IMG/VR virus record: IMGVR_UViG_3300046787_000286
Coordinates: 124,001 to 188,000 of that record
Reading direction: 5' to 3' (one strand)
DNA length: 64,000 bases
The notes under the pieces are model-generated. The model was not told the origin of the DNA and made no database searches. It saw only the letters and a program-made list of their open reading frames with translations. Below, piece by piece: positions 2,318-63,546 of this stretch. Within the stretch, counting starts at the first letter, position 1. Each line of letters opens with the position of its first letter. The translations under genes and the position numbers were made by a program.

Positions 2318-3001
2318 TTATTTAGCCACGATCTGCTTGGTCTGCCGTGTGATATTAGGCACAACCATGTTCAGGAACAACAGCTCGCCGTCATTGTTGT
2401 GATCAATGAAGAAGTGGGCATGTGTCCAGTTTATCCACCAATTCTTAGTAGGAGTGTTGACCCAGTCTTTTAATCCCGGGCCCATACGTACATTCTCACG
2501 TGCCTTCAAGTATTCAACTAGTGTATTACGTTGGGAATCGTCGATTGCTTTGGATCTAAAATAAGTCCTATGAGTCCATTTTGGATCGTATAACGCAATT
2601 GTGCCCACTGGGCAAATTTGATGTGCTTCCTGTATTTGTATCTTGTCAAGAGTTGGCAAGTAATACAGTGTTTTTACTAAATCAAAGTCATTGGTATAAA
2701 CATACCCACGATCATAGGAAACTACAAACTTTAGTTGCTCTTTGTGACGAACTAATAAGCGACACAACTCCTCAAGGTTCTGTTGCATTCCTGAATCAAT
2801 CCGATGCATTTGAAAGCTGCCGCCGTAAAGCTGTTTGTGTTCTGTCCGCCAGCGATTACGCTCCTGTACTAATTTATCGATCTTATCAGGGTTCAGTCCC
2901 CTGATAATCCCGAGCTCGCGCAAATCAAATCTAACACTGTATCTGTATTTCCCGAAGAAAGGTTGATTGGTTTCCACGGGTTTTACTTTAAGGTTGGACA
3001 A
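2318..3001 (-). CDS. hypothetical protein
   Basis: 227 aa ORF overlapping clpA stop. Confidence 0.75.
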   Translation of the reverse strand: MSNLKVKPVETNQPFFGKYRYSVRFDLRELGIIRGLNPDKIDKLVQERNRWRTEHKQLYGGSFQMHRIDSGMQQNLEELCRLLVRHKEQLKFVVSYDRGYVYTNDFDLVKTLYYLPTLDKIQIQEAHQICPVGTIALYDPKWTHRTYFRSKAIDDSQRNTLVEYLKARENVRMGPGLKDWVNTPTKNWWINWTHAHFFIDHNNDGELLFLNMVVPNITRQTKQIVAK

Positions 3002-9574: not shown

Positions 9575-10561
9575 TTAACCGCGTTCTGGAAAATAGTCTA
9601 CAATACTACTTTGCCTGCGTATGTCTACTGTAATGCAGTGCATGCCGCCGTCCCAAAATCCACGACAACGGAATGGTACCCAATGCACTGTGATACCGCG
9701 TTCACTTAGTGTCTGCTCTAGTGCCCCATTATAGCCCAGCATCATTACAGTGGATTCGTTTATTACCAAACAGTTTAGTTCGAAGAATGTTTCTGTGTAA
9801 TCGCCTACCCAGTCTTGAGCATGCTTGATAACATGCTCGTTGAAACTGCGATTTAATTCAACGCCTTCTGCATAAAACTTACCATTGTATTCCCCGCCTA
9901 CAGGGGGTGTAGTTCTGTGATTCCAGTATGTGGATTCACTTAAAAAGATACATTCCCATCCTGGAAAATTACGTTCGTACCCATCATAGTAATGGTTAGC
10001 AATGATCAGTCCTGGCTTGAGAATAGCAAAGCAGCCGTCCATGTGGCCGCCATTCTTTTCCCAGGTGATTCTGTAGTCTTTAAAAAGATTTAAATTGAGC
10101 TCTGGTGCGTCAAATATATCAGTATCAATAACAATATCTTTGCCTAGTCGCACAACATTGGCGCCATTGATAACGTGATTTGCACCAGGTGCAGTTTGTT
10201 TGTTGTATAACGCTAACGTGCTACGCCACGCTGCGCCTGCGTTGTATGGCGTTAGTAATGTGTTGCCCACTGTTAGAAATGTATCTCTAGGACATATCTC
10301 AGGCTTAGTTAACACACCATTTGAGTCAACAAAATCATTTATGTTGAGGTATTCCGGACGGCGTACTGTGATACCAAATGATTCTAATTTGCTTTGTATT
10401 ACAGCCAGGTCCTGTTTTGTTATTTCAGTTATTTTATAAAATACATCACGCACAGCAGGATCTAAATGATCGTACCAGGAACTGGGGTATACATCTCCAA
10501 GCCAGACTTCTTCCAGTTGACTCCATGAATTGTGACTGTTAATCAATACAGGTCTTTCCAT
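9575..10561 (-). CDS. amidinotransferase (pentein fold; glycine/inosamine amidinotransferase-like)
   Basis: NSHNSWSQLEEVWLG, CPRD, HMDG, GGMHCITVDIRR motifs. Confidence 0.85.
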   Translation of the reverse strand: MERPVLINSHNSWSQLEEVWLGDVYPSSWYDHLDPAVRDVFYKITEITKQDLAVIQSKLESFGITVRRPEYLNINDFVDSNGVLTKPEICPRDTFLTVGNTLLTPYNAGAAWRSTLALYNKQTAPGANHVINGANVVRLGKDIVIDTDIFDAPELNLNLFKDYRITWEKNGGHMDGCFAILKPGLIIANHYYDGYERNFPGWECIFLSESTYWNHRTTPPVGGEYNGKFYAEGVELNRSFNEHVIKHAQDWVGDYTETFFELNCLVINESTVMMLGYNGALEQTLSERGITVHWVPFRCRGFWDGGMHCITVDIRRQSSIVDYFPERG

Positions 10562-11760
10562 TTATCTACTAGGTAGTTCTTTAGATCCACTGGGGTCTTT
10601 ATGTTGTTTTGGCGCATGAAGTTGTTGATCTTTGCAGCACTAGCGTAGTCTGCATTACCGGGCTTGCGGGCATTGCTTAGATCAACGCCTAACCCGTCGT
10701 CTTCATTTCTATAGCCCTGTCCGTACACTATAAGACTCTTTAGTTTGCGCTGAGCCGACGGAGTTAGTTCTGTCTTGGCTTTTTTATAGATCAATTCCAG
10801 CCAGTCTTCCAAATAGTTACGACTCGGACTAAATGATCTGCGAACCGGCTGCGCACCTTTTAGCAACTCGCCTGCTTGAGCTGGGCTAACTGCTTTTCTT
10901 TTATCCTGTAGTTTCCAAGCTGTTTCGTCTGTGTATAAGAACGCAGGAATACCTTGTTTCTTTGCTGATAGTAATACTGTGCGCACTTCTGGTGAACGAT
11001 TTTCCATTTGTTCTTTTAACAGCACATGAACTTCTCGAATGCTTTCTGCATTAGCAGGGATAGCAGGAGTTCGACTATACACACGGTCTTCTGCTTCTCT
11101 AGAACGTGTGCCATCTGAGTGCAGCCATGAACGATTCCAATAATCAATGGGCCTTGTTTTGTAGTTGTTGTTTAGCCAAGAGCCATTCAACACAAACATC
11201 GCAGCTGAACTGCCCACATAACGATTATGGTAGTCCCCTACTCGTGTTCTTGTGGTGCTTAGGAAATAAGGATAGCCAGGAATCTCATAGTCCTTTTCAG
11301 CTTGTGTTCCTGTAGAGCTTGCTAGTAGAAACTCTCCAGAAGTTAGGATACGTGCTGCTGCTGCGGTATTTGTATAGTGATACAAAATAGCCGACGCTGC
11401 TTCTGTTAATTGTTCTTCTTCCCACACACGTTCTTCACCGCGATGCTTGTCCCAGAAATTCGATCCAGCATCAGTTTGGTCAAAACTTCTGTTGATACGG
11501 TACCCGTGAGTTTTTACGAAATCATACATCACTCGAGCAACACCTTGCCCACGATACTGGTCTTTGATAAACAAATCTTGCGCTTCTAAATCATACATGT
11601 CAGTTACTTCGAAAGTAACATGGCCGATCTCTCTACGGCCAGATGGGTCATACACAGTTACAATGACTTCGTCATCGCCCTCGACTATTCTGAATCTAAG
11701 CCCACTAAACTCTTCAGTGGGTTGCTCTTTATATTCTACAATGAATTCTGCTGCTCTCAT
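10543..11760 (-). CDS. putative head-packaged protein: leader + GNAT acetyltransferase + ADP-ribosyltransferase-like domain
   Basis: Start MRAAEFIVE 5 nt after TAAATA; GNAT motif A YRGQGVA; linker EEQLTE; ART-like LYHYT...FLSTTR...EAEDRV. Confidence 0.7.
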   Translation of the reverse strand: MRAAEFIVEYKEQPTEEFSGLRFRIVEGDDEVIVTVYDPSGRREIGHVTFEVTDMYDLEAQDLFIKDQYRGQGVARVMYDFVKTHGYRINRSFDQTDAGSNFWDKHRGEERVWEEEQLTEAASAILYHYTNTAAAARILTSGEFLLASSTGTQAEKDYEIPGYPYFLSTTRTRVGDYHNRYVGSSAAMFVLNGSWLNNNYKTRPIDYWNRSWLHSDGTRSREAEDRVYSRTPAIPANAESIREVHVLLKEQMENRSPEVRTVLLSAKKQGIPAFLYTDETAWKLQDKRKAVSPAQAGELLKGAQPVRRSFSPSRNYLEDWLELIYKKAKTELTPSAQRKLKSLIVYGQGYRNEDDGLGVDLSNARKPGNADYASAAKINNFMRQNNIKTPVDLKNYLVDKWKDLY

Positions 11761-11768
11761 ATTAATAT

Positions 11769-12263
11769 TTAATTGCTTTGATAAGTTGCACCATAGCCAA
11801 CCCAAGCAGGTGCGGTGTATCCTTGGGGATATGCTTGAAGATGTTGTATAGTACGATGCCAACCTTCAATCAAGTCATACCCATTATTTAATTTAGCAAC
11901 AATAATAGGTTCTTCACTTACACCGGTTTGTTGAATCATTTTTAATTGCTGTGCGTGACGTTCTGCATCTTTTGGTACTTTATATGGATTAGCCAAACCG
12001 CCTTCGCGACTGTGAATCATTTGTTGTGTTTTGGGTGTAAAAATGTCTAGTGTGATAGGTAGCTTTTGTAAACGCCATTGTACTTGACCAAAGTCTTGTT
12101 TATTTCTTTTTAGAAAATCATCTAGTTCAGCTTGGCTTCTAATACCTTTTGCTTGTTGGTATAAAAAGTCTTTTAACACGTAATCAGGCCAGGTGGGAAA
12201 CTGTTGCTTGACATAAGCAAATAATGATCCCCTGGACTCTGTTAGGAATTCTTGTGCTCTCAT
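11769..12263 (-). CDS. putative head-packaged ParB/Srx-like domain protein
   Basis: Leader MRAQEFLTE; PIIV...YDLIEGWHR ParB-N motif. Confidence 0.7.
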   Translation of the reverse strand: MRAQEFLTESRGSLFAYVKQQFPTWPDYVLKDFLYQQAKGIRSQAELDDFLKRNKQDFGQVQWRLQKLPITLDIFTPKTQQMIHSREGGLANPYKVPKDAERHAQQLKMIQQTGVSEEPIIVAKLNNGYDLIEGWHRTIQHLQAYPQGYTAPAWVGYGATYQSN

Positions 12264-12264
12264 A

Positions 12265-12882
12265 TTACAACACCCAAGGATCGTTAATTACAGGCGTGCC
12301 ATTGGCTCGCATCATGATGTTGCCATCGTGCAAATCCCAGGCGTAGCCAGCACGGTCGCCTATAGCTTCAAGTTTCCGAGCAGTCTTTAAAAATTGTGTG
12401 ATACCCTCTACACCAAATTGCTTTATTAATTTGGCGTAGGTGTTGGGGTTTGTTTCTTGAACATGTCTAAGAGTAGTCTTTATTGAATCGTAGTCTATTA
12501 CGTCTGACACCATGCCCGATAACACAGTACCTACTGAACCTGAATCCTTTAGCGGCTCTGTGCGAATCATTAGATAGCGATGTTTTTCATCGTCGTCCCA
12601 GGGATGCCAAAAGAAACTTTCGTGTCCATAAAATCTTGGCAAGAACGGATTTGATTGATTCTTCTCGCAGAACTTGTACCATCTAAAGAACATTTTATGA
12701 TCTTGGCTGAACTGAGCTGTTTCGCCTGTGCCAAATATCTTTAAGACATGCCCTGTACCGGGTTCCATAAATGCAGTTTGGTCCACGCCTTGACCTAGGT
12801 ACTTGTAGCCTTTCTTTTTCAAGGCATTGATTACAGACTGGTCTGTTTCAGAATATTCGTCTAAAAATTCGTGAGATCTCAT
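12265..12882 (-). CDS. putative head-packaged protein-kinase-like enzyme
   Basis: Leader MRSHEFLDE; LGQG glycine loop, VLKIF, DLHDGNIM catalytic loop, INDP. Confidence 0.75.
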   Translation of the reverse strand: MRSHEFLDEYSETDQSVINALKKKGYKYLGQGVDQTAFMEPGTGHVLKIFGTGETAQFSQDHKMFFRWYKFCEKNQSNPFLPRFYGHESFFWHPWDDDEKHRYLMIRTEPLKDSGSVGTVLSGMVSDVIDYDSIKTTLRHVQETNPNTYAKLIKQFGVEGITQFLKTARKLEAIGDRAGYAWDLHDGNIMMRANGTPVINDPWVL

Positions 12883-13185: not shown

Positions 13186-15126
13186 TTAGCAGTTCCAACG
13201 TCTACGTGCTTTACAAATTGCTTTGTCTGGAGTTTTAGCACATGAAATATTGTGCATGTTCATTTGACCTTTGGAGCGTGAGCAGTAGCTCTTTCTGCGT
13301 TTGCTTGCTTTAGAGCCCTTCTTTAGTTTAGAAGGCTTGGTAGTAACTGCTGTTTGCAGCTTTGATCCAGGATTTGCTCTGCGATATGCTTTTACAGCCT
13401 TGCGACTCATGCCGTCTGTTCTGTCACTCTTGTTGGCTTTTTGCCAGTCTTCGTTCAACTGAGAAGTCACGGCAAACACATACAGTTCATCGTGTGATAA
13501 AGATTCTAAATCTTCCCAAATCATTTCGGGATCTACGCCATTATGATCTGCAATTCGGTTAATAGAAGATTCAATTAAATCAAATTCTTCCGTTAATTCA
13601 GGATCTATACCTTGTGCTTTTTCGCTTTGTAGATAATCCCATACTGTCACAAGATAATCTTCAGCCAGGCTGATCTTTTCTTGACACCATTCAGGCAAGT
13701 TATCGCGATCGTCGATCACTTGTTGCAAGCCTTCTACAGCATTCTTTAGTGTGTGCAAGCTGCCGTGTGCCATGCCTGCTTCGTCATCGTACTCGGCATT
13801 GTAGTCTTCTGCTGCGCCTTGCTCTGTGATCCCACCGTCGCTGTCAAATCTTGGCTGAGTTCTTCCTGCCTGACCGCCTTGGGTCATATTACGCCCATTG
13901 CTTGGTATTCTTTTGGGTCCAATGGCTGGCGGCGATTTAAACGCACGGTTGCTTAGTTTAACAGTAGTACGACCTGGCACAGTGCGATCTATTGCAAGCC
14001 CAGTTTTTGGATCATGGGCAGCTCGCGCATAAAATGCAAGCTCGTCTCTAGTAAATCCGTCTTTTTCTTGGTGTGGCTCTGCTAGTGCCGCTAATTGATC
14101 TTTAATTCGTTGGCGTTCTGTGCTATTGTTAGTTGCGTGTAATTGCTTTTGCAACAGATGTCTCTGGTATATACGCTCATGCTCTTCATCATCGTCGTTT
14201 AAGCCTTCCGCCACACCTTCTTTAGTCTTTAAGCGTTTGAGAACAGCCATGTTCTCAGGCTTGCTCATGGTTTTCTTCAATGCGTCCAGCGCACGATCCT
14301 GTATGGCTTTGCTAGTCATCATACTATCTGGACCAATATGAATGTCTGGACCATTACTTGTATTGTGCTTGTCTCTTGACCCGTATGTGCTATGTCTCTT
14401 ACGATTGCTACCGTCACGTCCTGCACCGTCGCCGTCCATTTCTTTGATCTTATTGCCTTGTTGGTCAATGCCCGAGTTTGGTGGAAGATATACCTGCTTA
14501 CATGGCATGCATACTTGAACAGCATGTCCCTGGTACTTGCCACCTTGTAAGTCTCCGCCGCACTTGGGGCATGTGTGCATGTGGGAAATATCGCCGCGAT
14601 GCTTCTTTGGAAACTGTACAACTTCGCCTTCCTCTACAGATTCTTTTGGAACACAGTTATTAACTCGCACCCCACCCTTGACTTTGGTCTTGGGATTGCC
14701 AATTTTTTTGTTGTCCCAGCAAGCAGGATCCAAGCGAACTTTTTCTTCCGCTACACCTTGCTCAATGATGTCACCGCGAGCTTTAGCAACTTTAAACAAT
14801 GCAAACAAACTATCCCAGTCATGGGTGTTATTCATTTTGTCTTTGTATAGCTGTTGCTTTTCTGGTTTAATCTTAGCTAGGAACTTGTGCTTCATGCTGT
14901 GATTAGACGGAAATCCTGAGTAGTCATTGCCCAAATCTTTTACAGTGTAATCAAAGCCTTCGTCAATTGTTTTTAACTGACTGCGCAACTGATCTGCCAT
15001 TTTTAAATGATGATCACGTTTGATATCTTTGCTCTGCTTGGCAGCTTTTTCGTGAGCAGTAATTTGTGCCCATAATGCGTTTTGTTTACGCTGGTCTTTG
15101 TCTTCGTTGATTTCGTCGAATCTCAT
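13186..15126 (-). CDS. multi-module polyprotein-like putative internal head protein (646 aa)
   Basis: Start MRFDEINE; about 9 dissimilar modules separated by IDE, QGVAE, SVEE, IKE, EGVAE, QGAAE, LTE, LNE. Confidence 0.75.
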   Translation of the reverse strand: MRFDEINEDKDQRKQNALWAQITAHEKAAKQSKDIKRDHHLKMADQLRSQLKTIDEGFDYTVKDLGNDYSGFPSNHSMKHKFLAKIKPEKQQLYKDKMNNTHDWDSLFALFKVAKARGDIIEQGVAEEKVRLDPACWDNKKIGNPKTKVKGGVRVNNCVPKESVEEGEVVQFPKKHRGDISHMHTCPKCGGDLQGGKYQGHAVQVCMPCKQVYLPPNSGIDQQGNKIKEMDGDGAGRDGSNRKRHSTYGSRDKHNTSNGPDIHIGPDSMMTSKAIQDRALDALKKTMSKPENMAVLKRLKTKEGVAEGLNDDDEEHERIYQRHLLQKQLHATNNSTERQRIKDQLAALAEPHQEKDGFTRDELAFYARAAHDPKTGLAIDRTVPGRTTVKLSNRAFKSPPAIGPKRIPSNGRNMTQGGQAGRTQPRFDSDGGITEQGAAEDYNAEYDDEAGMAHGSLHTLKNAVEGLQQVIDDRDNLPEWCQEKISLAEDYLVTVWDYLQSEKAQGIDPELTEEFDLIESSINRIADHNGVDPEMIWEDLESLSHDELYVFAVTSQLNEDWQKANKSDRTDGMSRKAVKAYRRANPGSKLQTAVTTKPSKLKKGSKASKRRKSYCSRSKGQMNMHNISCAKTPDKAICKARRRWNC

Positions 15127-21965: not shown

Positions 21966-22595
21966 TTAGTGACCGTTGTTATGTAACCAGGCGCCTTTGT
22001 TAAAGCTGTTGCTCCAGCTTGCTGCATCTGCTCCGCCTTTGCGTTGGCTCCATTCGTAGCCTGCACGGTGTCCTGAACAGTCCTTGGTGCATTGCGAACC
22101 GCGGAATGTTAGTTCGTTTAATTGTGATTCATCTAGTTCATTGCCACTAAACGCAACAACATCATACGGGCCCCATGGATTGCCAGTGCGGCTGTCAATA
22201 TCATTACCAGCATCGTCGTAATCACTATATTCGTAATGATCATCGCTTTGAATCTCTACACCGTCAAAATTAGCATTGTAGCCAATGCTGTATTTGCGTA
22301 CTTTGCCGTCGCCACAATGAATACCACGCTCTAAGATGCGTTCTATATCTTCTTGGCTTTTGATGCCTGCATGTAGATCGCCTGTGTTAAATGTATCATT
22401 ATACCAAGCTGATGCTAGTGCTTTTAAATAGTTCCCGCCGGAACTGCTGCCACCTGGGGAAAATTCCGTTAAATCTTCATTCTTTTTGCGTCCAGCACAG
22501 TGAGCTTTTTGACTAAAGCCTTTGGGACTGGCACAATTGATAGAGCGCTTGTATTTTGCACTCCACTCTTCTGAAATGAATTCCGTTGCTCGCAT
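21966..22595 (-). CDS. three-module polyprotein-like putative internal head protein
   Basis: Leader MRATEFISE; junctions DLTE-FSPG and QLNE-LTFR. Confidence 0.7.
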   Translation of the reverse strand: MRATEFISEEWSAKYKRSINCASPKGFSQKAHCAGRKKNEDLTEFSPGGSSSGGNYLKALASAWYNDTFNTGDLHAGIKSQEDIERILERGIHCGDGKVRKYSIGYNANFDGVEIQSDDHYEYSDYDDAGNDIDSRTGNPWGPYDVVAFSGNELDESQLNELTFRGSQCTKDCSGHRAGYEWSQRKGGADAASWSNSFNKGAWLHNNGH

Positions 22596-33139: not shown

Positions 33140-36013
33140 TTATCCTAAAATTGTTTGTTTGGGAAATACAAGATATTTATCGTATATCTGTGTATTGGTA
33201 TACATATCTACCGGCGCAATGAATCTCACGCTTTGGCCGTCGAACGTTGTTTCATCTTCGCCGACTACTTCTATATCCCAGGTAGCCCCAGAACCTGTAC
33301 CAGTAACGTTTGTGCCGGCTATGTTGTAATAGACATTGCCTACACTAAACATCGGTGCAGTTCCTTGGCAAAATACTTGCTCAATAGTTCCGTTTGTGTC
33401 AACTACTGCCACAGTTAATGTTATATCGTTTAGCGTATTAGTGCCGCCCACTTGCGATCCGTTGATGCGAATGACATCACCAACTGCATATCCTGTTCCG
33501 CCGACAAATACAAAACTTGAATCATTTGGCACAGGTAATTGATAGTGTGCATTGTAATCGAATGTGGTTTCTGCAGGGGTCGGTTCCCAGGCACCAGTAC
33601 TGCTGTCAGCAATCGGATCCCAATTCTTGCTGAGCAAGCGGTCTAACTCATATCTATCAACTTCAAAATCAATTAGGTTCAAACGCTCACCAAACTTGGT
33701 TTTGATATAATAAGCTATCTGATCGCCTTTGCCTGGCTTGGCATAAGCTAATACCCAAGAAGGAGTGAACCCGAGCACTTTTCCGTCGGCTTGTTTTGAT
33801 GTCATCCACAATGGTAATACATCGTCGACTTCGCCAACTGTATCAATAACTTGATCTCTCATGTTGATCAGGCTGTTTGGGTAAACTACAGATACTTCTG
33901 TAGAATCATCTTCGTTAATCGGGTATGGCAACGTAACTTGCTTGCTAACGCTTTCGCCTTCGTTGTTTAATAAATTGTCAATCACACGGCTGTAAATTAC
34001 TTCGTAAATCACTACGCCTGCTGTGTTGCGAGCTTGGGCAACACTAACTTCGCCTAGTGTTAGATTTTTCCAGTAATGATTTTCATACAGGCTGCTAACA
34101 TATTCGTCGTATGTGGCTGCTGTTAATCCAAACGCATGATCATAAACAACTTTTGTAGCTCTTCCAAAATTTGGATCGGTGGGGCGATACAATAAGTCAG
34201 GCTGGAATATGTCTGCATTCTGTAATAAATCTTGTATTAACGCACGATCATTTTCTGGTGGCATTGCCTCAATGTAAAGATTATCGTAAGGCTCGTTATA
34301 CAAGCGTTTTACTGTGACACTAAATTCTTTAGATACATTTACCAATCCATTTGAACTAAATGCTCGAACTGTGAACACATGGGTCATGTCAAATGTTGTT
34401 TCAGTGTCTTGTCCTGTGATTGACAAGTCGTTCATGGTAACGTCGAATGTTGTTGTGCCTAAGTCCAGTGCAAATGTATCAAAGCTCACACGACCTGCAA
34501 TATCGCCCGAAGGCAATAACGCTAATCCTTGTGGCAAACTTGATGTACTTCCGTTTAGCAATTCATATTGCAACGGAATACCGGCTGTGTTATAAGCAGC
34601 GACATATAGTGTGCTGGTTGCGCCATTAACAATAGTGCCCAAATCTGCGTCAACTAGCCAGGTAATTTCTGTATCAACTGCACCAATGATTGACAGGCTG
34701 TAGCTATATTCGTTGCTAATCAGCGGATCAATGTCTTTGCTAATTCTAACACTAAATGTATATTCACGTTCGGTTAATCCCAAGTTTGGAATATATCCGT
34801 ATAACCATCCAGAGTTTTGATCTAGTGTGAGCCCAGGGATGCCCGAACTGTCGCCTGCATCGTATATCAATTCAAAATCAACTTGGTCGCCGTCAAGGTC
34901 GAGCCCGATGAATTGATAAGCGAACCAGTTGTCATTTCTAACTGTGCCAATTGTTCCTTCGGGGTTGGTAATAATTGGTGGGCGAATTGGTGTTACGTCT
35001 GCTGTGACAAAAGTGTTGTCAGCAGTGATATCTGTAGTATCTGCACTCAAGCTATCCTTGCTGTAAACGTAGATACTAAAGGTTCGTAAATCACTATATA
35101 CCCCGTCAGAGATTTCCAATGTAAATTCGTAATTGGAATTGTAACTCATGGTGCTAAAGTCGAAACTATATTCGTCGTAACCTTGCCCATCGCGGCCAAA
35201 CCCAGCTTCTGCATCGTTTGATGCAAGTGGTGTAATGAACCCTGAAATTAACCCCGTGCTCGATATACCAAGACCTTTGGGTAAAGTTCCACCTACTAGT
35301 TTAACAACTACTTCGGCATTGGGGTCCACATCAGTATATTCAATTTGTAAACCTGCAACTAAACTGCCGTCGTAGTATTGTGCAATTTGCCCACTAGGTG
35401 TGGTAAACTCAGGAGGATTAGGTCCTGTAACAGTTAATGTAAATGTTCTATCACGGATTTGATCTACAACGTAATTGCTGCCGACATATTTTTTTGTATA
35501 AGCTCTAACAGTAAACTTGCTAGTTACGTCTACTGCAACTTGTGTAGGGACGCCCTGAATACTTGCAACAGCTTTTGGTGTGCCGATAATTAACCCGTTA
35601 TCAGCTACTTGAATTCCAGAAGGAAGCTGACCAGCTTGTAGATTAAAAAGAATGTGCTGTTTAAATTCTGCAGGCATTGTGCCCGATGCAGTTGTTAGCG
35701 TAATTGGGGTAGTTGTAAATTCTGATGTTGTAATGGAAAATTGTGTGCTGTTGTACACATCCAGCACAAAGTATCTTGTTAGGGCACTTATGCCACCGTA
35801 CACTAACCCGGTGGTTCCGCCAAACATTACGTTTAGCCCAGGGTAAATATTTGCTGTACTATCACACGTGATTCTGTTTGTAGTACCGCTTGTGGCTGTG
35901 CAAGTTACATTAGCTACAACAGGTGTGTCGGCCAACATGGCCAGCTGATAAAACACCCCTTCCGGGATGCTACCTAAAGTGCCTGCGGGCGTGATCCAGA
36001 CCGGTTGCGACAT
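33140..36013 (-). CDS. large baseplate-associated protein with Ig-like repeats
   Basis: 957 aa; repeated GxLPxGL...GxISG Ig-like units. Confidence 0.7.
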   Translation of the reverse strand: MSQPVWITPAGTLGSIPEGVFYQLAMLADTPVVANVTCTATSGTTNRITCDSTANIYPGLNVMFGGTTGLVYGGISALTRYFVLDVYNSTQFSITTSEFTTTPITLTTASGTMPAEFKQHILFNLQAGQLPSGIQVADNGLIIGTPKAVASIQGVPTQVAVDVTSKFTVRAYTKKYVGSNYVVDQIRDRTFTLTVTGPNPPEFTTPSGQIAQYYDGSLVAGLQIEYTDVDPNAEVVVKLVGGTLPKGLGISSTGLISGFITPLASNDAEAGFGRDGQGYDEYSFDFSTMSYNSNYEFTLEISDGVYSDLRTFSIYVYSKDSLSADTTDITADNTFVTADVTPIRPPIITNPEGTIGTVRNDNWFAYQFIGLDLDGDQVDFELIYDAGDSSGIPGLTLDQNSGWLYGYIPNLGLTEREYTFSVRISKDIDPLISNEYSYSLSIIGAVDTEITWLVDADLGTIVNGATSTLYVAAYNTAGIPLQYELLNGSTSSLPQGLALLPSGDIAGRVSFDTFALDLGTTTFDVTMNDLSITGQDTETTFDMTHVFTVRAFSSNGLVNVSKEFSVTVKRLYNEPYDNLYIEAMPPENDRALIQDLLQNADIFQPDLLYRPTDPNFGRATKVVYDHAFGLTAATYDEYVSSLYENHYWKNLTLGEVSVAQARNTAGVVIYEVIYSRVIDNLLNNEGESVSKQVTLPYPINEDDSTEVSVVYPNSLINMRDQVIDTVGEVDDVLPLWMTSKQADGKVLGFTPSWVLAYAKPGKGDQIAYYIKTKFGERLNLIDFEVDRYELDRLLSKNWDPIADSSTGAWEPTPAETTFDYNAHYQLPVPNDSSFVFVGGTGYAVGDVIRINGSQVGGTNTLNDITLTVAVVDTNGTIEQVFCQGTAPMFSVGNVYYNIAGTNVTGTGSGATWDIEVVGEDETTFDGQSVRFIAPVDMYTNTQIYDKYLVFPKQTILG

Positions 36014-39237: not shown

Positions 39238-39747
39238 TTAGTCGTTGAACAGTTTCACTAGTTCTTGTGCTAGGGCGTTGTTGCCCAGCACAGGGCTGAG
39301 TGCGGAATGTTCGTCTCGGTACATGTTGTATAAACCCATTTTCTTTTCTGCTTTAGAAGCACTTGCATTCGAAAGACGGTCTGCTGACTTCACAAAGTCT
39401 GCACCCGGAGTACGAGCAATTTTTTCAATTACATTGGACATTTTTTCAGCACGGTCGCTGCCGTGTGCTGTTACAGCCCAAACCATGTCTGCTACATTAG
39501 TGCCGAACATTTTGCGGATGTCGTCAATTGTGACTTCCGGGCTGTCTTCTACTGTGTCGTGCAACCAGGCAGCGGCAATAATTTCAGGGTCGTCGGTGAT
39601 TTGCTTCACACGGCGCACCACATCTTCCAAGTGAACTGAGTATGGCTGCTCGCCATACTTTTGATCTTTGTGTGCGGCACGAGCAACAAGCTCGGCGCGA
39701 TGGACTAGACTGTTACCAATAGTTGCGTTTACTTCGTTAATTTTCAT
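39238..39747 (-). CDS. HD-domain hydrolase (SpoT/Mesh1-like small alarmone hydrolase)
   Basis: AHKDQ...PYSVHL, AAWLHDTVED, VKSADRLSN. Confidence 0.85.
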   Translation of the reverse strand: MKINEVNATIGNSLVHRAELVARAAHKDQKYGEQPYSVHLEDVVRRVKQITDDPEIIAAAWLHDTVEDSPEVTIDDIRKMFGTNVADMVWAVTAHGSDRAEKMSNVIEKIARTPGADFVKSADRLSNASASKAEKKMGLYNMYRDEHSALSPVLGNNALAQELVKLFND

Positions 39748-43735: not shown

Positions 43736-45262
43736 TTACTTGTTGATCAGGTGTCGCACAGCTTCTAATTCAGGAATGTAGTCACCAAGTTGACTGTTTC
43801 TGGCTGCGTCCAATTTATCATTGAATTCAAAAAACTTACGCAACTTCTCTACATCAAAGGTAGGATTTGTTTTGTAATACTCGTACATAGAATCAATTGC
43901 GCTCTTGTTAGATTTGCCATCGCTCATGTACATATTGGTTTTCATACACCTAGACAAACTGTCTAACGCCATCTCAACATTGGGATGGATAAACGGGCTT
44001 TGATGTTCGACATAATTTATCTGTACGTACACCGAAGTGTCTGGCAATTCTCGATCTAAAAATTCATAAAGCAAATGTAAGTTCGTAACATTGTAAATTC
44101 CTGGAACACAGTTGATAGATATACGATGCCCATGGCTTTTTAATAATTTTATATTTTTAATAATAGTATCAAAGTTACTGCCCCAACGCCAATAATCGTT
44201 CACACGCCCGTATCCGTCTAAACTTATGCTGAAATTTACTACAGAAAAGTGATTGCACAGATTTAAAAAGCGTTGACTAATTTTTTGTCCGTTTGTGCCA
44301 AACGTGAGTTCAAAATCTGTTTTGTTTGCTGCTATACATCTTTCCATGAAAGTGAGAACTTCCGGGATAACAGTTGGATCGCCACCGGTCAAGTATATCC
44401 GTGACAATGGTGACAATGTATTGATGTCGATCCTATCAATATTGGAATATTGGTACTGCTCGGTATCATTTACCCACTTACTAAAAGTGATGTTGTGCTG
44501 TTTAAATTCAGCTTCAATCCGATGACTGTATGCTGGACGGCAACCTCTGCACATTAGATTGCACTTGTTGCTCAGTCGCAATTCATATAGATAAGGATGA
44601 GTAATCTTGTCGAGATCCTCAAACGATTGGATGTTTAATTTATTAATCCAATCCCGAGTTTCAAATTGCCGATAGCTCTCAATACCTTTATCTTCGTATT
44701 CTTCGTAGCAAAACCCGCAGTGCTCAGGTATGCGTTCTCCTGCTAACATTTTTTGTCTAATAGCCTGATAATCAGGATTGGTCTTCCAGTCAACAATTTT
44801 ATCAGGGGTTGTTACATTTGCCCTGGCTCTGGGACAAAGGCGTGTGGTGCCATTTTCCTCAGTGAAATTTATCCATGGGTAAATGCAAAAACTTTTATTC
44901 TCGGTTGTTAGTTTGTCAATTGAGTGAGCAGCTAGCACATTGGCATTGTCTTTGTATACTACATCATAGCCGCGTTGGTCAATCTCTTCCATGATCTTTA
45001 TAGTACTCAACAATGGCTTCCAATTAGTCCATTGACTAATCGGCTGATCTAATAGAACAATTTGATCAAAGTAATCAGCCAACTTGACTATAGCGCCAAA
45101 CGGTATGTCTAAAACAGTAGTATGATAAAATCCATCATGGGCAGGCACAAAGTCTGCCTGACTAATAAGACCGTGATTAATTGTGTTATGCGTTGCGGCC
45201 AACACACTTACACGACGATCGGTATCTTCATCGTTGTTTCCTAAATATAAAACTTTGTTCAT
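43736..45262 (-). CDS. radical SAM protein with N-terminal twitch/SPASM-like Cys cluster
   Basis: CNLMCRGC, LTGGDP, TNG, SISLDG; FCIYPW...CGFC. Confidence 0.88.
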   Translation of the reverse strand: MNKVLYLGNNDEDTDRRVSVLAATHNTINHGLISQADFVPAHDGFYHTTVLDIPFGAIVKLADYFDQIVLLDQPISQWTNWKPLLSTIKIMEEIDQRGYDVVYKDNANVLAAHSIDKLTTENKSFCIYPWINFTEENGTTRLCPRARANVTTPDKIVDWKTNPDYQAIRQKMLAGERIPEHCGFCYEEYEDKGIESYRQFETRDWINKLNIQSFEDLDKITHPYLYELRLSNKCNLMCRGCRPAYSHRIEAEFKQHNITFSKWVNDTEQYQYSNIDRIDINTLSPLSRIYLTGGDPTVIPEVLTFMERCIAANKTDFELTFGTNGQKISQRFLNLCNHFSVVNFSISLDGYGRVNDYWRWGSNFDTIIKNIKLLKSHGHRISINCVPGIYNVTNLHLLYEFLDRELPDTSVYVQINYVEHQSPFIHPNVEMALDSLSRCMKTNMYMSDGKSNKSAIDSMYEYYKTNPTFDVEKLRKFFEFNDKLDAARNSQLGDYIPELEAVRHLINK

Positions 45263-46405: not shown

Positions 46406-46513
46406 CGAACTCCTTTTGTTTCTGTATGTGTATATTATAGCAAATTGGGCAATTCTGGTCAACCAAAAAAATACCCTGCCAACTAGCAGGGTTTTGTAAC
46501 ACTTTGGGTTTAA
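46406..46513 (-). repeat. operator-terminator-promoter-RBS cassette, copy 1
   Basis: Near-identical to 49540-49601 and 49829-49917; TTGACC-N17-TATAAT at 46434-46462; ccctgc/gcaggg hairpin. Confidence 0.85.
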
Positions 46514-46881
46514 TCTGTAAACTGCTGATTTTGCAGTTGTTGCCCTAGACTCTTTTGGGTTTTGATGTTGGCGTTGTTGCCTGTGCCCGAGTCCTTGTGA
46601 CTAAAAATACCATACAAATTAAACACAGTTGGATCTCTACCGCTGAGTGTGTAAAACACCGAAAGGTCTTGTGTTAGGTGAGCATGCTTGATACCGGGCA
46701 CAGCTCTACCTAATGGGCCAGCTGATACCATTTGAGTATCACTTTTGCCAAACTGCTGGATTGGATTGTTAGTTTTAGTACCAACAAAATCTGCAAACTT
46801 TGCAGCCAGTCCCGGAACTGCCTGAGTCTTTTCAGCATAAGTTTTTTTAAACAACGGGCTCATCATGAACCGAACACTCAC
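46510..46881 (-). CDS. YafQ/RelE-like mRNA interferase
   Basis: SPLFKKTY, KHAHLTQDLSVFY, LYGIFSH; GTG start overlapping upstream TGA, GGAG RBS. Confidence 0.65.
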   Translation of the reverse strand: MSVRFMMSPLFKKTYAEKTQAVPGLAAKFADFVGTKTNNPIQQFGKSDTQMVSAGPLGRAVPGIKHAHLTQDLSVFYTLSGRDPTVFNLYGIFSHKDSGTGNNANIKTQKSLGQQLQNQQFTD

Positions 46882-47051
46882 TTTAGACTCTCCAGTAATT
46901 GTTCGCCTGTCATGGGCTCGCTCCATTCATTGGCTTGATGGGTGCGAACTACCTTAACTAAATCTTCAGTTAGGTAGCCGGTGTTGTTTTCAGCATCAAT
47001 GCTTTCAAACAATGCTCGATCAGATGGTTGTTGGACTTCGTTAATACGCAT
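46878..47051 (-). CDS. 57-aa acidic protein, putative antitoxin with capsid-targeting-like leader (not in ORF track)
   Basis: MRINEVQQPSDRALFESIDAENNTGYLTEDLVKVVRTHQANEWSEPMTGEQLLESLK; TAAATA 4 nt upstream; GTGA overlap with the toxin gene. Confidence 0.7.
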   Translation of the reverse strand: MRINEVQQPSDRALFESIDAENNTGYLTEDLVKVVRTHQANEWSEPMTGEQLLESLK

Positions 47052-47054
47052 CAG

Positions 47055-47456
47055 TTATTTACTCTTTTTGGCTGCTTTGTTTTCTGCGTCTGAGGACTTT
47101 AGCACACGCATCATTTCTGCTTGCTCAATTTCCTTTTTAACTTTGGCTTGGTATGCACGAACTTTAACTTCGCACTTTTCACGCTTGTTCTTGTCGGACA
47201 CTTTGATCAAGAAGTCGTAGTCACGTGCCCACTTTACACCAGCCAGCCATTGCTGGAGCTCTGTAATAGAACCGTTGAACAACATAGCATCTCGTGCGTA
47301 GGCAGGCAGTTCTTCGTCCTGGGGGAACACAGCTACAGTATCGCCGAATTTGCCGTCGCCCCAGCTGCCATGCTTGTCGTAGCCCCAACGCATGCCCAAG
47401 TCATGCAGTTGCTTTTCCAAGGCTTGGATTTTGAGAATTAGTGCATATCCGCTCAC
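47055..47456 (-). CDS. hypothetical protein
   Basis: coupled ORF. Confidence 0.7.
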   Translation of the reverse strand: MSGYALILKIQALEKQLHDLGMRWGYDKHGSWGDGKFGDTVAVFPQDEELPAYARDAMLFNGSITELQQWLAGVKWARDYDFLIKVSDKNKREKCEVKVRAYQAKVKKEIEQAEMMRVLKSSDAENKAAKKSK

Positions 47457-49539: not shown

Positions 49540-49601
49540 TCAAACTCCTTTTGTTTCTTTATGTGTATATTATAGCAAATCGGGCAATTTTGGTCAACCA
49601 A
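49540..49601 (-). repeat. promoter-RBS cassette, copy 2
   Basis: about 60 bp nearly identical to 46406-46467; TTGACC-N17-TATAAT at 49569-49597. Confidence 0.85.
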
Positions 49602-59541: not shown

Positions 59542-62500
59542 ATGGCAAACCAAATTAACATTGATATCGGTGCAGCAGCAAATGACGGCACAGGCGATCC
59601 GTTACGCACCGCGTTTAATTACGTAAACAACAACTTTTCTAACGTTTGGAATACAGGATTACCTAACTCAAACGTTCAATTTTCTGACAATAGAATTTTA
59701 ACAGTTAACACCAACGCTAACTTGGTGTTGGCACCTAATGGCATTGGCAAAGTTGCATCCAACGTTGATATTGTGCCTAACACAGCTAATGTATTTGCGC
59801 TAGGTGGGGCAAGTCGTCGTTGGAACACAGTTTACGGACAGTATTTAGATTTATCGCACAATGCAGTTATTGGCGGGAATTTAGTTGTTACAGGTAACTT
59901 ATCAGCAGGGAATATCAGTTACACATCTAATGTATTTGTTGGCGACCTAGAAGGATCAGTGTTCGACGGTGCTAGTTCGATTGTGTTGGATGTAATTGAC
60001 AGTACCATTTACGTAGACAACTATCGTTATGCAAATGGCGTTCCTGTTTCTTTTGGCGGCAATTATAGCAATGCAAACGTGGCAGCATATTTGCCAACTT
60101 ACACTGGCAATCTCAGTGCTAATAATATCACAGCTGGCAATGTGTTCACTGCACAGACAGTAACAGCAAATGATGCATACATTAACACTGGCACCTTTGC
60201 CGGGGATGAGAATACCGGAGACGCTGCAATGTACGTTGGATCGCCAACGTTTACTAACCTGGGCTCAGATATCATGGCCCAGTTTACAGGCAACGTAACA
60301 ACCTACGCTCAAATCAACTTGCAGAACTGGAGTAATGCTGCCACTGCATCCGGCGATTACATTTTAACAGCAGACAACGGCAACGACTCTACTCACTTCC
60401 TGGATATGGGTATAACCAGTTCTACCTGGGACGGTACACAAACAAACGTCTTAACCGGTCTCAATCCAAACAACGGTTACTTGTATGTACAAGATGGCAA
60501 CTTAACACTGGGCACAAGAGCAGGCAACGTAAGTTATAGCTGGAAGTTTGATACCACAGGCAACTTAACTGTGGCCGGAAACGTTATCCCCACAGGCAAC
60601 AACACACAGAGTTTAGGTAGTGCAACCCAGCAATGGAATGACTTGTATTTGTCCAATGCTACAATTTACATGAACTCTGTGCCGATCAGTTTGACTGCCG
60701 ACAATGTGCTCACAGTCAATGGTGCAGATGTTGTAACAACCAACAGTGAAGGACAGGCAAACATTGGTAACCTTGACATCAACGGCACTGTTATTCAAAT
60801 TGCAGAAGGTGCTTCAGAAACTCTAATCAATATTACTCCTAGTGGACCTACCGCAGGTTGGGCATATTTACAACTTCCCACAAATGGCACTGCAAATACA
60901 GCCAACACACGCTTGCATAACGATGCCGGCAATATAGAATTTGGTACAGGAGATTTTTCAACAGGTAGCACCAACTATACTTGGACATTTAACAACACCG
61001 GAACCTTGGTTTTTCCTGCCAACCCTAATGGTCAAATCTATGGTGGCCAAGACAACGATTTTATCATCACCACCTCCAATGCCAATGCTGCCACATACTA
61101 TTTTACTTTCAGTCAGTTAGGCGATCTCACAGTTCCTATCAATCTCAATGTGTCGGGCAATGTCTATACAAATGATATTGTAGGAGCAGGAGCTGGCAAC
61201 ATCACAATCACAGCTAACACACAGTCATGGTTATTTGATGACACTGGCATGTTGACTTTGCCCAGCGAGGGTCAGATTAGATCTGTGGCCAACACTGGCA
61301 TGAGACTCAGTGCTGGTGCCAGCGATGTCACTGGCTTGTTGTTAAACAACACTGGCGATGCTGAACTCTATGCTAATGCCAATGTATCCGTATACACTGA
61401 CTCTGGAAACACCGGCTGGACGTTTGACACTGCTGGTAATCTAACACTTCCTGGTAACGCTGGTGCAAACAATGCAAGCATTTCAGCAACAGTCAATGGT
61501 AGTATTCTAGGCCTAAACAGTCAGGCTAATGGTTCAGTAAGATTGAGAGCATATGGCAGTGCTGCCAACCTGGTTGCTGGCATGGCTGTGTTTGGTGAAG
61601 ACGGTGAAGTTGATCGTGTTCAAATCAGCACTTATAACCCTGGCATTGATGATAACAACGCTTGGGTATTTAACACTAGTGGCGATTTAACCACGCCAGA
61701 TGGTAACATATTCTTTGGCACAGGCGCTAATAGTGCTGTTATTGTGCCAGCAGGTAATTCTGTTAAAATAGCCGCAGATCGCGGAAATACTTCAAAAAAT
61801 TATATTGATATAACCAGCAGTGGAATAACCATTGATGCACTAGGTGGTTCCACTGCTGACATTAGAATAAGAGCCGCAGATGATATTTTTGTGCAAGGCG
61901 GGGACAAAACAAGTGCTCCGGGACAACGCGGTGGTGATATCAATATTGATGGTGGCCAAGGTGGCCCAGACAATGGTGTCAATGCAGGCGACGGCGGCGA
62001 CATTGCCATTCAAGGTGGCCTGGGCGGCGAGATATTAGCAGGTGGATCAGGCGACGGCGGCGATGTGACACTGCTTGGTGGTACAGGTAGCACCGCCAAC
62101 GTTGCTAATTTACTAGGGGCAGGCCGCGGCGGCCTGGTGGTGATACAAGGTGGTCAAGGTGGCGATCAAGCAGGCAACACTTCTCTATCAGAGCGCGGCG
62201 GCAACGTTGACATCTACGGCGGCCAAGGCAGTTTTGACTTTGCGAACACTTTGCCAAGTGGTCTTCCAGGCCATGTTAACCTCTATGGTGGCAACTGGGG
62301 ATTTGTCAATGCTCCAAGTGGCAACATCTATCTCAATACCTATGACGGAACAAACTTCAAGACATTGACCTACGATACTGCTGGCAATGTCACAATGGCC
62401 GCTGGTGGTGCATTAAACATGGTGGGATCAAGTTCGGGCATTGTTCAATCGCCAAACAATGATTTGATTGTCACAGTTCAAGATGATGACAATGACGATT

Positions 62501-63546
62501 GGGCATTATACAATCGAATCACTGACACTGGCGCAACATTGGGCGAAACAAGACTACGCCGTGGCGATTTTCGAATTGATTTTCCTGGTGTGTCAAAGAC
62601 CTTTACCTTTGATGATAGTGGTGTACTTAGTTTACCCGGTGATATTGCTTCTAGCACTCAAGGCGGAGATATCAGTCTTTATGCAATCGACGATGGCGAC
62701 AGTGGATCTGCAGAGATAAAAACTATCAGTTTTGCTGGTAGTACGCTAGGTAGTAATGTCAGAGTAACCCAAAGCAACGCCACTATTTCGACCAGTAACG
62801 CTGCATACACCTGGACATTTGATAACACTGGTAATCTAACAGTTCCAGGAAACACCATTGTTTCCACAGCCAATGCCACAGGCGGTCTAGGTGGTAAGAG
62901 CGTAAGCATTACTGCTGGCGCCAGTGACGCAGTTACTTGGAATTCAAACCCAGGTGGCAATGTAAACATCACAGGCGGATACGGCTCGTTTGGCGGCGGC
63001 GGCGGCGGTCCTGGTGGTAATGTTAATATCACAAGTGGTGGTAGTTCAGATAGCCATGCAGGCAATGTAACTATCAATTCCGGCGCTAATGCATGGAACT
63101 TTGATTACACCGGTAATTTAGACGCCCCGGGTAATATTACATCCACTAACTTTGTCGGCAACGGCGCAGCATTGACCAATGTTGCTACACAAGTAACAGG
63201 TTCCTGGACATTAGCCGCAGGGACAAACACTGCAAATATTACAGTTCCGCCAAACGGTACTTACACAATCTGGGTCAATGGAAACATTCCAAACGGTATT
63301 GCAGTATGGAACGCTACTGTAACTATTACCAACAATAACGTGCCAGTAATTGGACAACAATTTGCTTGGAATTATTCTGGTAATGCGTTGGTGATTACTT
63401 CAATTCCATCACAGATCATTGGAACAGCAGGTGCTATTAGTAATGCATCACCGGCTGTTGGCACAACTACCAATGTGTTTGAGTTCAGCATTGACAACAA
63501 CAGTGGTAATAGTCAGACTGTGGACTACGGATGGACTAAACTTTAA
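59542..63546 (+). CDS. long tail fibre / receptor-binding protein
   Basis: 1334 aa, G/N/T-rich; anchor GAAANDGTGDPLRTAF; about 10 W/FxFDxxGxLTxP repeats; GGxVxIxGG repeats; TAAATA upstream. Confidence 0.85.
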   Translation: MANQINIDIGAAANDGTGDPLRTAFNYVNNNFSNVWNTGLPNSNVQFSDNRILTVNTNANLVLAPNGIGKVASNVDIVPNTANVFALGGASRRWNTVYGQYLDLSHNAVIGGNLVVTGNLSAGNISYTSNVFVGDLEGSVFDGASSIVLDVIDSTIYVDNYRYANGVPVSFGGNYSNANVAAYLPTYTGNLSANNITAGNVFTAQTVTANDAYINTGTFAGDENTGDAAMYVGSPTFTNLGSDIMAQFTGNVTTYAQINLQNWSNAATASGDYILTADNGNDSTHFLDMGITSSTWDGTQTNVLTGLNPNNGYLYVQDGNLTLGTRAGNVSYSWKFDTTGNLTVAGNVIPTGNNTQSLGSATQQWNDLYLSNATIYMNSVPISLTADNVLTVNGADVVTTNSEGQANIGNLDINGTVIQIAEGASETLINITPSGPTAGWAYLQLPTNGTANTANTRLHNDAGNIEFGTGDFSTGSTNYTWTFNNTGTLVFPANPNGQIYGGQDNDFIITTSNANAATYYFTFSQLGDLTVPINLNVSGNVYTNDIVGAGAGNITITANTQSWLFDDTGMLTLPSEGQIRSVANTGMRLSAGASDVTGLLLNNTGDAELYANANVSVYTDSGNTGWTFDTAGNLTLPGNAGANNASISATVNGSILGLNSQANGSVRLRAYGSAANLVAGMAVFGEDGEVDRVQISTYNPGIDDNNAWVFNTSGDLTTPDGNIFFGTGANSAVIVPAGNSVKIAADRGNTSKNYIDITSSGITIDALGGSTADIRIRAADDIFVQGGDKTSAPGQRGGDINIDGGQGGPDNGVNAGDGGDIAIQGGLGGEILAGGSGDGGDVTLLGGTGSTANVANLLGAGRGGLVVIQGGQGGDQAGNTSLSERGGNVDIYGGQGSFDFANTLPSGLPGHVNLYGGNWGFVNAPSGNIYLNTYDGTNFKTLTYDTAGNVTMAAGGALNMVGSSSGIVQSPNNDLIVTVQDDDNDDWALYNRITDTGATLGETRLRRGDFRIDFPGVSKTFTFDDSGVLSLPGDIASSTQGGDISLYAIDDGDSGSAEIKTISFAGSTLGSNVRVTQSNATISTSNAAYTWTFDNTGNLTVPGNTIVSTANATGGLGGKSVSITAGASDAVTWNSNPGGNVNITGGYGSFGGGGGGPGGNVNITSGGSSDSHAGNVTINSGANAWNFDYTGNLDAPGNITSTNFVGNGAALTNVATQVTGSWTLAAGTNTANITVPPNGTYTIWVNGNIPNGIAVWNATVTITNNNVPVIGQQFAWNYSGNALVITSIPSQIIGTAGAISNASPAVGTTTNVFEFSIDNNSGNSQTVDYGWTKL

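Follow-up and report, generated by a model that had tools for sequence, protein, structure and literature searches.

The type II module DinJ-YafQ of Escherichia coli K-12, whose toxin is a ribosome-dependent mRNA interferase, is the best structural match for a pair of overlapping genes that we analysed in a 64 kb stretch of viral DNA (positions 124,001 to 188,000 of the IMG/VR virus record IMGVR_UViG_3300046787_000286; the whole of this stretch is called the window below), and that encode a small acidic partner of 57 residues (aa) and a basic RNase-like protein of 123 aa. As in DinJ-YafQ, the genes overlap with the antitoxin position first, an acidic partner is joined to a basic, low-Glu RNase, and the large protein carries putative equivalents of YafQ H63 and D67, and probably one of H87. 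Unlike YafQ, it shows 15–18% identity to that toxin, stays under the Pfam and NCBIfam cut-offs and has a C-terminal extension of 25 aa, while the partner is unrelated to DinJ and lacks its ribbon-helix-helix DNA-binding domain; in further contrast, the window pair has neither its own promoter nor autoregulation and was found only in viral contigs. The YefM-YoeB and RelBE modules share the fold class and the gene order of the window pair, but their catalytic residues differ and the partner is not of the Phd/YefM type. PaaA2 is a small acidic antitoxin of about 60 aa without a DNA-binding domain, and the PaaA2-ParE2 module thus resembles the window pair in its partner, with ParE2 among the fold matches; however, the window toxin resembles RNases and not ParE, and its partner is predicted to be folded and not disordered. 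Bacteriophage T4 RegB is an early phage endoribonuclease with a reported RelE-like fold, and the window protein is likewise predicted to be an early-expressed phage RNase acting on mRNA, but a RegB-like relation was rejected as no similarity was detected, and RegB has no partner gene.

Fused antitoxin-toxin genes are documented in the RelE/ParE superfamily (PMC11980606), and in many relatives of the window pair the partner and the RNase likewise form one polypeptide; the documented fusions are cellular and carry YefM, ParD or HigA domains, whereas the N-terminal module is new here and the genes are viral. Phages also encode RNase domains of the Barnase-EndoU-ColicinE5-RelE (BECR) fold, the PBECR domains, which like the window family occur solo or inside very large multidomain proteins; the polyvalent proteins, which often carry BECR RNases, are predicted to be injected, and their PBECR domains to be packaged and injected with them (PMC5512222). 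The window family differs from these domains in its YafQ-like HxH...D...H arrangement and its dedicated partner. In T4, unrelated internal proteins share a short N-terminal leader followed by L/I-x-E, where gp21 cuts, and this capsid targeting sequence is the sole feature common to the diverse internal proteins of T-even phages (PMC9026906, PMC3012670). The window also holds a set of leaders, to which the partner start M-R-x-x-E-V is related, but the partner lacks the F-[IL]-x-E core, and the T4 internal proteins are not RNase inhibitors.

An earlier note on this DNA had described the pair as late-expressed and armed by the prohead protease, the small protein neutralising the RNase until a Glu-specific protease destroys it in the prohead and leaves an active RNase to be injected into the next host. 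Our analysis points elsewhere: we consider it somewhat probable that the pair is a phage-specific inhibitor-RNase module of the toxin-antitoxin type with an early phage function. The features of the pair are as follows.

46878..47051, minus strand: small acidic partner gene (57 aa, isoelectric point (pI) about 4.4), predicted small helical domain
46510..46881, minus strand: RNase-like gene (123 aa, basic, pI about 9.9), RelE/YafQ/YoeB fold, predicted mRNA endoribonuclease
46878..46881, minus strand: GTGA overlap of the partner TGA stop and the RNase GTG start, expected to couple translation
46890..46893, minus strand: GGAG Shine-Dalgarno sequence of the RNase gene, 8 nucleotides before the GTG, as read from the sequence

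A recount of the sequence agrees with the earlier description of both genes: the partner open reading frame (ORF) begins with MRINE and holds 8 Glu, four of them in [ILV]xE motifs (INE, LFE, LTE and LLE), and it overlaps by GTGA an ORF of 123 aa (start GTG at 46881) with a single Glu and the motif HAHLTQD...SH. Counted from its first ATG, the larger ORF would span 46510-46926 and encode 138 aa; however, its homologues open with M-S/T-V-x-F exactly at the GTG of the window, and the true product is therefore taken as 123 aa. Note that the GGAG falls within the Leu-Glu codons (CTG GAG) of the partner, which is the LLE motif. The two products are complementary in charge, with pI values of 4.4 for the partner and 9.9 for the RNase-like protein.

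Both genes are conserved. The large protein has 50 homologues at E ≤ 1e-17 and the small partner 24 (both counted as 90% clusters, the former in a clustered protein collection), and an exhaustive search for the partner gave 181 clusters at 50% identity; the large protein is encoded at 45 viral loci in IMG/VR, several of them on contigs of 200–330 kb. Given these numbers, both ORFs exceed what chance would give, and we regard them, on this comparative evidence, as genuine conserved genes. At one of these loci (L002, on a 214-kb contig), every neighbouring gene is identical to the window, but across the loci the pair is kept together while the flanking genes vary, the partner lying directly upstream of the RNase gene, mostly overlapping it, at a minimum of 25 of the 45 loci. 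The pair is therefore an adjacent, co-directional and overlapping unit that is conserved as such, which is the arrangement of type II toxin-antitoxin genes. The 344-kb Ralstonia phage RsoM2USA is the only deposited phage with the pair (genes 115 for the partner and 114 for the RNase); a tblastn search of known phages with the RNase found no match beyond it, the window showed no DNA similarity to known phages, and no relative of the family, which looks phage-restricted, turned up when 185,579 bacterial and archaeal genomes were scanned with a sequence pattern.

The AlphaFold2 model of the 123-aa protein, computed with the family alignment, reached a predicted local distance difference test (pLDDT) of 94.1 and a predicted template modelling score (pTM) of 0.88, and shows a β-α-α-β-β-β topology followed by the C-terminal helix of 25 aa, which ends in NQxF. 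All 36 top Foldseek matches in the PDB are RelE/ParE-superfamily toxins, with YafQ and YoeB the best and with template modelling scores (TM-scores) on the target of 0.72–0.81 for the YafQ, YoeB and RelE-family top matches. A second family member (48% identical) gave the same matches, and over both members the YefM-YoeB/RelBE fold class reached TM-scores on the target of up to 0.85; Cami1, a ribosome-bound RelE-like RNase, was also found, as were ParE toxins at 0.5–0.67. Topology and structural matches thus place the protein in the RelE/ParE (BECR-fold) superfamily, and at the level of fold the YafQ/RelE-like identity that had been proposed for it is sustained.

At the level of sequence, searches of Pfam, PHROGs, NCBIfam and PADLOC with both proteins gave no significant family, and sequence and profile searches of the PDB with the RNase-like protein returned chance matches only. 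The YafQ family cut-off (Pfam PF15738, NCBIfam TIGR00053) was not reached, the window protein having no match at all; 6 of the 33 relatives match the YafQ hidden Markov model (HMM), only at E ≥ 0.025, and as an example the relative P0050 reaches 13.7 bits where the cut-off is 87. The sub-threshold matches of a few relatives to the YafQ, YoeB and RelE HMMs all cover the C-terminal half. Since the family lies below all Pfam and NCBIfam thresholds and has no relative in the bacterial genomes scanned, the 123-aa protein is, according to the models, a new and apparently phage-restricted clade of the RelE/ParE superfamily, closest to the ribosome-dependent RNases. Large environmental phages thus appear to share a clade of RelE/YafQ-fold RNases that is confined to phages and comes with a partner of a new kind, a small, acidic and helical protein lacking a DNA-binding domain; the clade occurs among them as gene pairs, as fusion proteins and, in one instance, within a giant multidomain protein.

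The family alignment shows H66, D72 and H95 to be invariant and H68 nearly so. In a profile alignment to E. coli K-12 YafQ, the sequence of which was taken from its genome record, H68 corresponds to H63, D72 to D67 and Y77 to Y72, and the catalytic residues of YafQ are H50, H63, D67, H87 and F91 (PMC4652777). The invariant H95 is likely the equivalent of YafQ H87, as its place in the last strand and a partial match to the HMM suggest. The RNase-like active site is plausibly intact, and from it and the fold we infer the enzymatic activity and its dependence on the ribosome.

The partner was followed through its alignments and its natural fusions. M1, L14, E16 and W43 are conserved and E5 nearly so. 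In the model of the natural fusion P0042, the partner module forms four short helices (H3-7, H10-21, H28-39 and H49-65, pLDDT 84–96), which are followed by a low-confidence linker and then by the RNase domain. In many relatives, partner and RNase domain are joined in one reading frame, with fusions of several lengths, and an exhaustive search showed that all 10 proteins of at least 160 aa that start with the partner module run into a RelE-like RNase domain and into nothing else; such fusions have, by the comparison of these sequences, arisen repeatedly. We considered the partner as a general adaptor for varied effectors and rejected this, the fusion being confined to the RelE-like RNase domain. 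Because the genes are adjacent at 25 or more loci and the fusion is exclusive to this domain, the two proteins form a cognate functional unit, and the toxin-antitoxin-like pair described before is upheld in that respect. Searches of family collections, the PDB and NCBIfam with the partner found no DNA-binding family or structure; with no such domain and no promoter before the pair, the partner is not an autoregulating DNA-binding antitoxin. A side observation concerns partner residues about 17–40, which hold the conserved stretch N-[ND]-T-G-[FY]-L-T-E-D-L between two helices; this stretch weakly matches EF-hand proteins (calbindin, calmodulin and the LETM1 EF-hand, E 0.15–1.3) and does not fit a canonical calcium-binding loop.

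The transcription of the pair was assessed from the following features.

47056..47061, minus strand: the TAAATA box of the earlier note, no promoter but the 3′ end of the gene upstream (AGT AAA TAA)
47055..47456, minus strand: upstream operon neighbour (133 aa, no family match), 3 nucleotides from the partner ATG
49569..49597, minus strand: sigma-70 promoter (TTGACC-17-TATAAT with TG), the nearest strong one upstream
46473..46492, minus strand: intrinsic terminator (8-bp stem, T7 tail), 17 nucleotides past the RNase stop

Read in the frame of gene 47055-47456, the TAAATA at 47056-47061 is made up of the third base of a Ser codon, a complete Lys codon and the TA that opens the TAA stop. This hexamer occurs 37 times in the window, where 48 occurrences are expected, the flanks of its sites there share no common context, and the T4 late consensus TATAAATA has no match in the 64 kb; the box had been read as a late promoter and does not stand as one. 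A TAA followed by ATA as a recurrent signal of gene ends was also considered and rejected, as only 5 of the 66 TAA stops precede ATA. Instead, the two genes come last in a tightly packed operon of ten cistrons that runs from 49507 to 46510 behind the promoter at 49597-49569, with no other coding-strand promoter of at least 10/12 between that promoter and the pair, and the terminator at 46492-46473 ends the operon, the next promoter following at once. Since the pair closes a sigma-70 operon that ends in a terminator, and no late promoter was found, its late expression is unsupported. A promoter scan at a threshold of 11/12 covered the stretches 38.8–59.1 kb and 8–26 kb: the former holds 11 near-perfect sigma-70 promoters, all on the minus (coding) strand, which confirms that the pair lies in early-like surroundings, and the latter, which includes the cluster of leader-bearing genes treated below, holds none of at least 11/12. 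The gene at 47055-47456 accompanies the pair at just one further locus and is therefore not counted as part of the module.

Two further observations touch this region. The window appears to cover two regions, one early and one transcribed differently. In addition, a near-identical cassette of about 70–100 nucleotides occurs three times on the minus strand (49895-49837, 49597-49569 and 46492-46434); it comprises a terminator stem-loop, the TTGACC-17-TATAAT promoter, a conserved leader and AAGGAG, with the stem-loop missing from the 49597 copy, and recalls the promoter-stem-loop cassettes known from T4-type phages.

Put together, the inhibitor-RNase module may work as follows. The 123-aa protein would be a divergent endoribonuclease of the RelE/YafQ/YoeB fold, most likely cutting ribosome-bound mRNA, with catalysis through a His/Asp/His site formed by H68, D72 and H95 together with H66. 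The partner would be made first, from the same early transcript, with the GTGA overlap and the internal GGAG coupling translation of the RNase to its own; its most likely action is to bind the RNase and to hold or tune the activity of that enzyme. The module is not an addiction cassette under autoregulation, given that the partner lacks a DNA-binding domain and that no promoter belongs to the pair itself; it would act in the infected cell, where it would either control host or phage mRNA as the phage takes over the cell or serve in conflicts with the defences of the host or with other phages. The module bears on how lytic phages of jumbo size handle host and phage mRNA, and on the reuse of toxin-antitoxin parts outside addiction or defence.

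Several points weigh against this proposal. On the side of the RNase, the alignment to YafQ has weak statistical support (E about 0.01) and leaves YafQ H50 and F91 without matched equivalents, H68 is replaced by K or A in some homologues, and at the sequence level the protein belongs to no curated toxin family. On the side of the partner, binding and inhibition are what we infer from the exclusive fusions and the charge complementarity; the pTM of 0.67 for the P0042 fusion leaves the arrangement of its domains open. Moreover, classical antitoxins wrap their toxins with disordered tails, whereas the partner is helical and well folded as a domain, and stable fusions fit poorly with a simple model of a labile antitoxin. 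As for the role in infection, it is a guess.

Some of these same points would suit another explanation, in which the partner is an obligatory subunit of the RNase (an adaptor, a specificity factor or a folding factor) and the two form a two-subunit enzyme and no toxin-antitoxin pair. Repeated and stable fusions in the order partner-RNase would be natural for such an enzyme, as would a confidently folded helical domain on a flexible linker that has no DNA-binding domain and belongs to no recognisable antitoxin family, and the weak EF-hand-like helix-loop-helix matches would agree. However, the acidic and basic complementarity, together with a coupled order in which the antitoxin position comes first, is the classical arrangement for neutralisation, and fused genes are, as said, documented for antitoxin-toxin pairs (PMC11980606). 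We hold the two-subunit enzyme to be unlikely, though it survives better than the other alternatives to the inhibitor-RNase module.

The next alternative keeps the core of the earlier note: the partner, or the fused N-terminal module, would be a targeting and inhibitory pro-piece of a packaged pro-RNase, cut in the prohead at L/I-x-E by a T4-type Glu-specific prohead protease, which would free the RNase for delivery with the DNA into the next host. Its first support was the uneven Glu content of the pair, and this was followed across homologues. The median number of Glu in 85 distinct RNase domains is 4 (2.9% of residues), with extremes of 1 and 8 and the window protein at the low end, and 32% of the homologous domains hold at least one [ILV]xE. 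In composition-preserving shuffles, [ILV]xE is enriched in the partners (80 observed, 30 expected) and modestly depleted in the RNase domains (36 observed, 52 expected, P=0.007), but the tested sequences are related and the counts were not corrected for relatedness, so this signal is inflated; for the window pair alone, the counts are 4 against 1.7 expected in the partner and 0 against 0.5 in the RNase. One of the four motifs of the partner, LLE, is moreover constrained, as it doubles as the Shine-Dalgarno sequence of the RNase gene. A further point in favour is that [ILV]xE lies within the 12 residues before the RNase domain, at the fusion junction, in 16 of the 18 distinct natural fusions.

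These patterns can nevertheless be understood with no protease at all. Amphipathic acidic helices naturally carry aliphatic-x-Glu, with the aliphatic residue two positions ahead of an exposed Glu, and β strands disfavour it; an acidic all-helical partner and a basic β-rich RNase explain the distribution of Glu. The E. coli K-12 pair is equally asymmetric: YafQ has 3 Glu in 92 aa, a pI of 9.5 and no [ILV]xE, and DinJ has a pI of 5.2 and two [ILV]xE. Since that pair shows the same, the asymmetry in charge and Glu appears as an ordinary property of this toxin class, and the comparison across homologous pairs that the earlier note had called for does not bear out selective proteolysis.

The early operon, taken alone, does not exclude packaging, because the T4 genes ipI, ipII and ipIII, whose products are packaged, also follow early-type promoters, with no TATAAATA within 120 nucleotides. 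T4-like leaders are a second line of support for a packaged pro-RNase, and five otherwise unrelated proteins of the window start with MR-x-x-E-[FI]-x-x-E.

10543-11760, minus strand: protein with this start
11769-12263, minus strand: protein with this start
12265-12882, minus strand: protein with this start
13186-15126, minus strand: protein with this start, here MRFDEINE
21966-22595, minus strand: protein with this start

The other four leaders take the form MR-x-x-EF-[IL]-x-E, and these window leaders closely resemble the T4 capsid targeting sequence with its L/I-x-E processing site (T4 record). The five proteins were considered as paralogues and this was rejected, as their similarity is confined to the first 9 residues. 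Nowhere in the window is the excess of [ILV]xE larger than in the products of 13186-15126 and 21966-22595. The start M-[KR]-x-x-E-[FVIL] opens 6 of the about 101 called genes of at least 60 aa, where about 0.25 would be expected, and the 57-aa partner is a seventh case. The five leader-bearing proteins are thus candidate packaged or injected proteins, and T4-like leaders on unrelated proteins may help to predict which proteins of uncultured phages are injected.

All homologues of the partner, fusions with long inserts among them, keep M-[KR]-x-x-E-[VI] at their very N-terminus, which counts in favour of packaging. However, the window partner reads M-R-I-N-E-V and then QQPSD, and does not end in F-[IL]-x-E as the T4-type leaders of ipII and ipIII, about 10 aa long, do. 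In RsoM2USA, which encodes a gp21-like protease, ORF89 and ORF132 are virion proteins by mass spectrometry, in which only the most abundant bands were analysed; both start with MKTFKQFL, almost the T4 IPI leader, and ORF81 starts with MKTFKLFL. These proteins would agree with packaging in this phage, but the partner start is the same there as in the window, whereas the putative targeting leaders differ (MRAxEF... in the window, MKTFKQFL in RsoM2USA); the leader of the partner therefore goes with the family of the partner, not with the scaffold of the phage. No homology was found between the window proteins and the RsoM2USA virion proteins. As side observations on RsoM2USA (locus L049, 52–101 kb), ORF87, ORF88, ORF115 (the partner) and ORF116 share a second type of start, MK[LI]xE, and the cluster from ORF86 to ORF90 mixes both types. 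In the window, the gene at 39238-39747 (minus strand), directly behind a consensus sigma-70 promoter, encodes a 169-aa HD_4 (RelA/SpoT-type HD) phosphohydrolase that starts with MKINEV, a six-residue start of the same type as that of the partner.

A third line of support for the packaged pro-RNase comes from one multidomain protein of 1475 aa, found at three loci.

L010, 1146-5570: 1475-aa multidomain protein
L011, 2104-6531: 1475-aa multidomain protein
L012: the same protein

It comprises an Amidoligase_2 domain (E 1.6e-5), a weak NTP_transf_2 match, a HELTH stretch and, near its end, a RelE-like domain that lies between LTE and VAE after a short partner-like helix; the HELTH stretch would fit a zincin-like HExxH peptidase, which no profile confirmed. 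In its make-up, the protein resembles the polyvalent proteins predicted to be injected (PMC5512222). Its gene is followed by that of a 1084-aa DUF6321/DUF5872 protein and then by that of a 343-aa protein starting with MRAQEF.

The circumstantial points for packaging each have an ordinary explanation, and neither the prohead protease of this phage nor its structural genes are seen within the window. We therefore consider the packaged pro-RNase distinctly unlikely, and give still a little less credence to the wider proposal, in which a protease-armed toxin-antitoxin logic would stand beside a larger set of leader-tagged injected effectors in this phage group. If packaging were true, it would provide a new way of toxin control and a new class of injected effector. 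Finally, the least probable of the explanations is that the large protein is no RNase, being a ParE-like inhibitor of, for example, gyrase or a catalytically dead RelE-fold binder: the ParE toxins among the fold matches, the C-terminal extension that YafQ lacks and the missing equivalents of H50 and F91 would allow it, but in fold the protein matches the RNases YafQ and YoeB best, and the invariant His/Asp/His constellation aligns with catalytic residues of YafQ.

Other features of the window lie apart from the pair. It contains no tRNA or tmRNA gene, and an ORF of 1334 aa on the plus strand (59542-63546) has no family match at all. Three further genes, all on the minus strand, encode a ClpA/ClpB-like double-AAA+ unfoldase (2988-5231), a 957-aa protein (33140-36013) and a radical SAM protein (43736-45262); the 957-aa protein holds an S8-peptidase-like region common to the jumbo phages Phosso and Atu_ph07.

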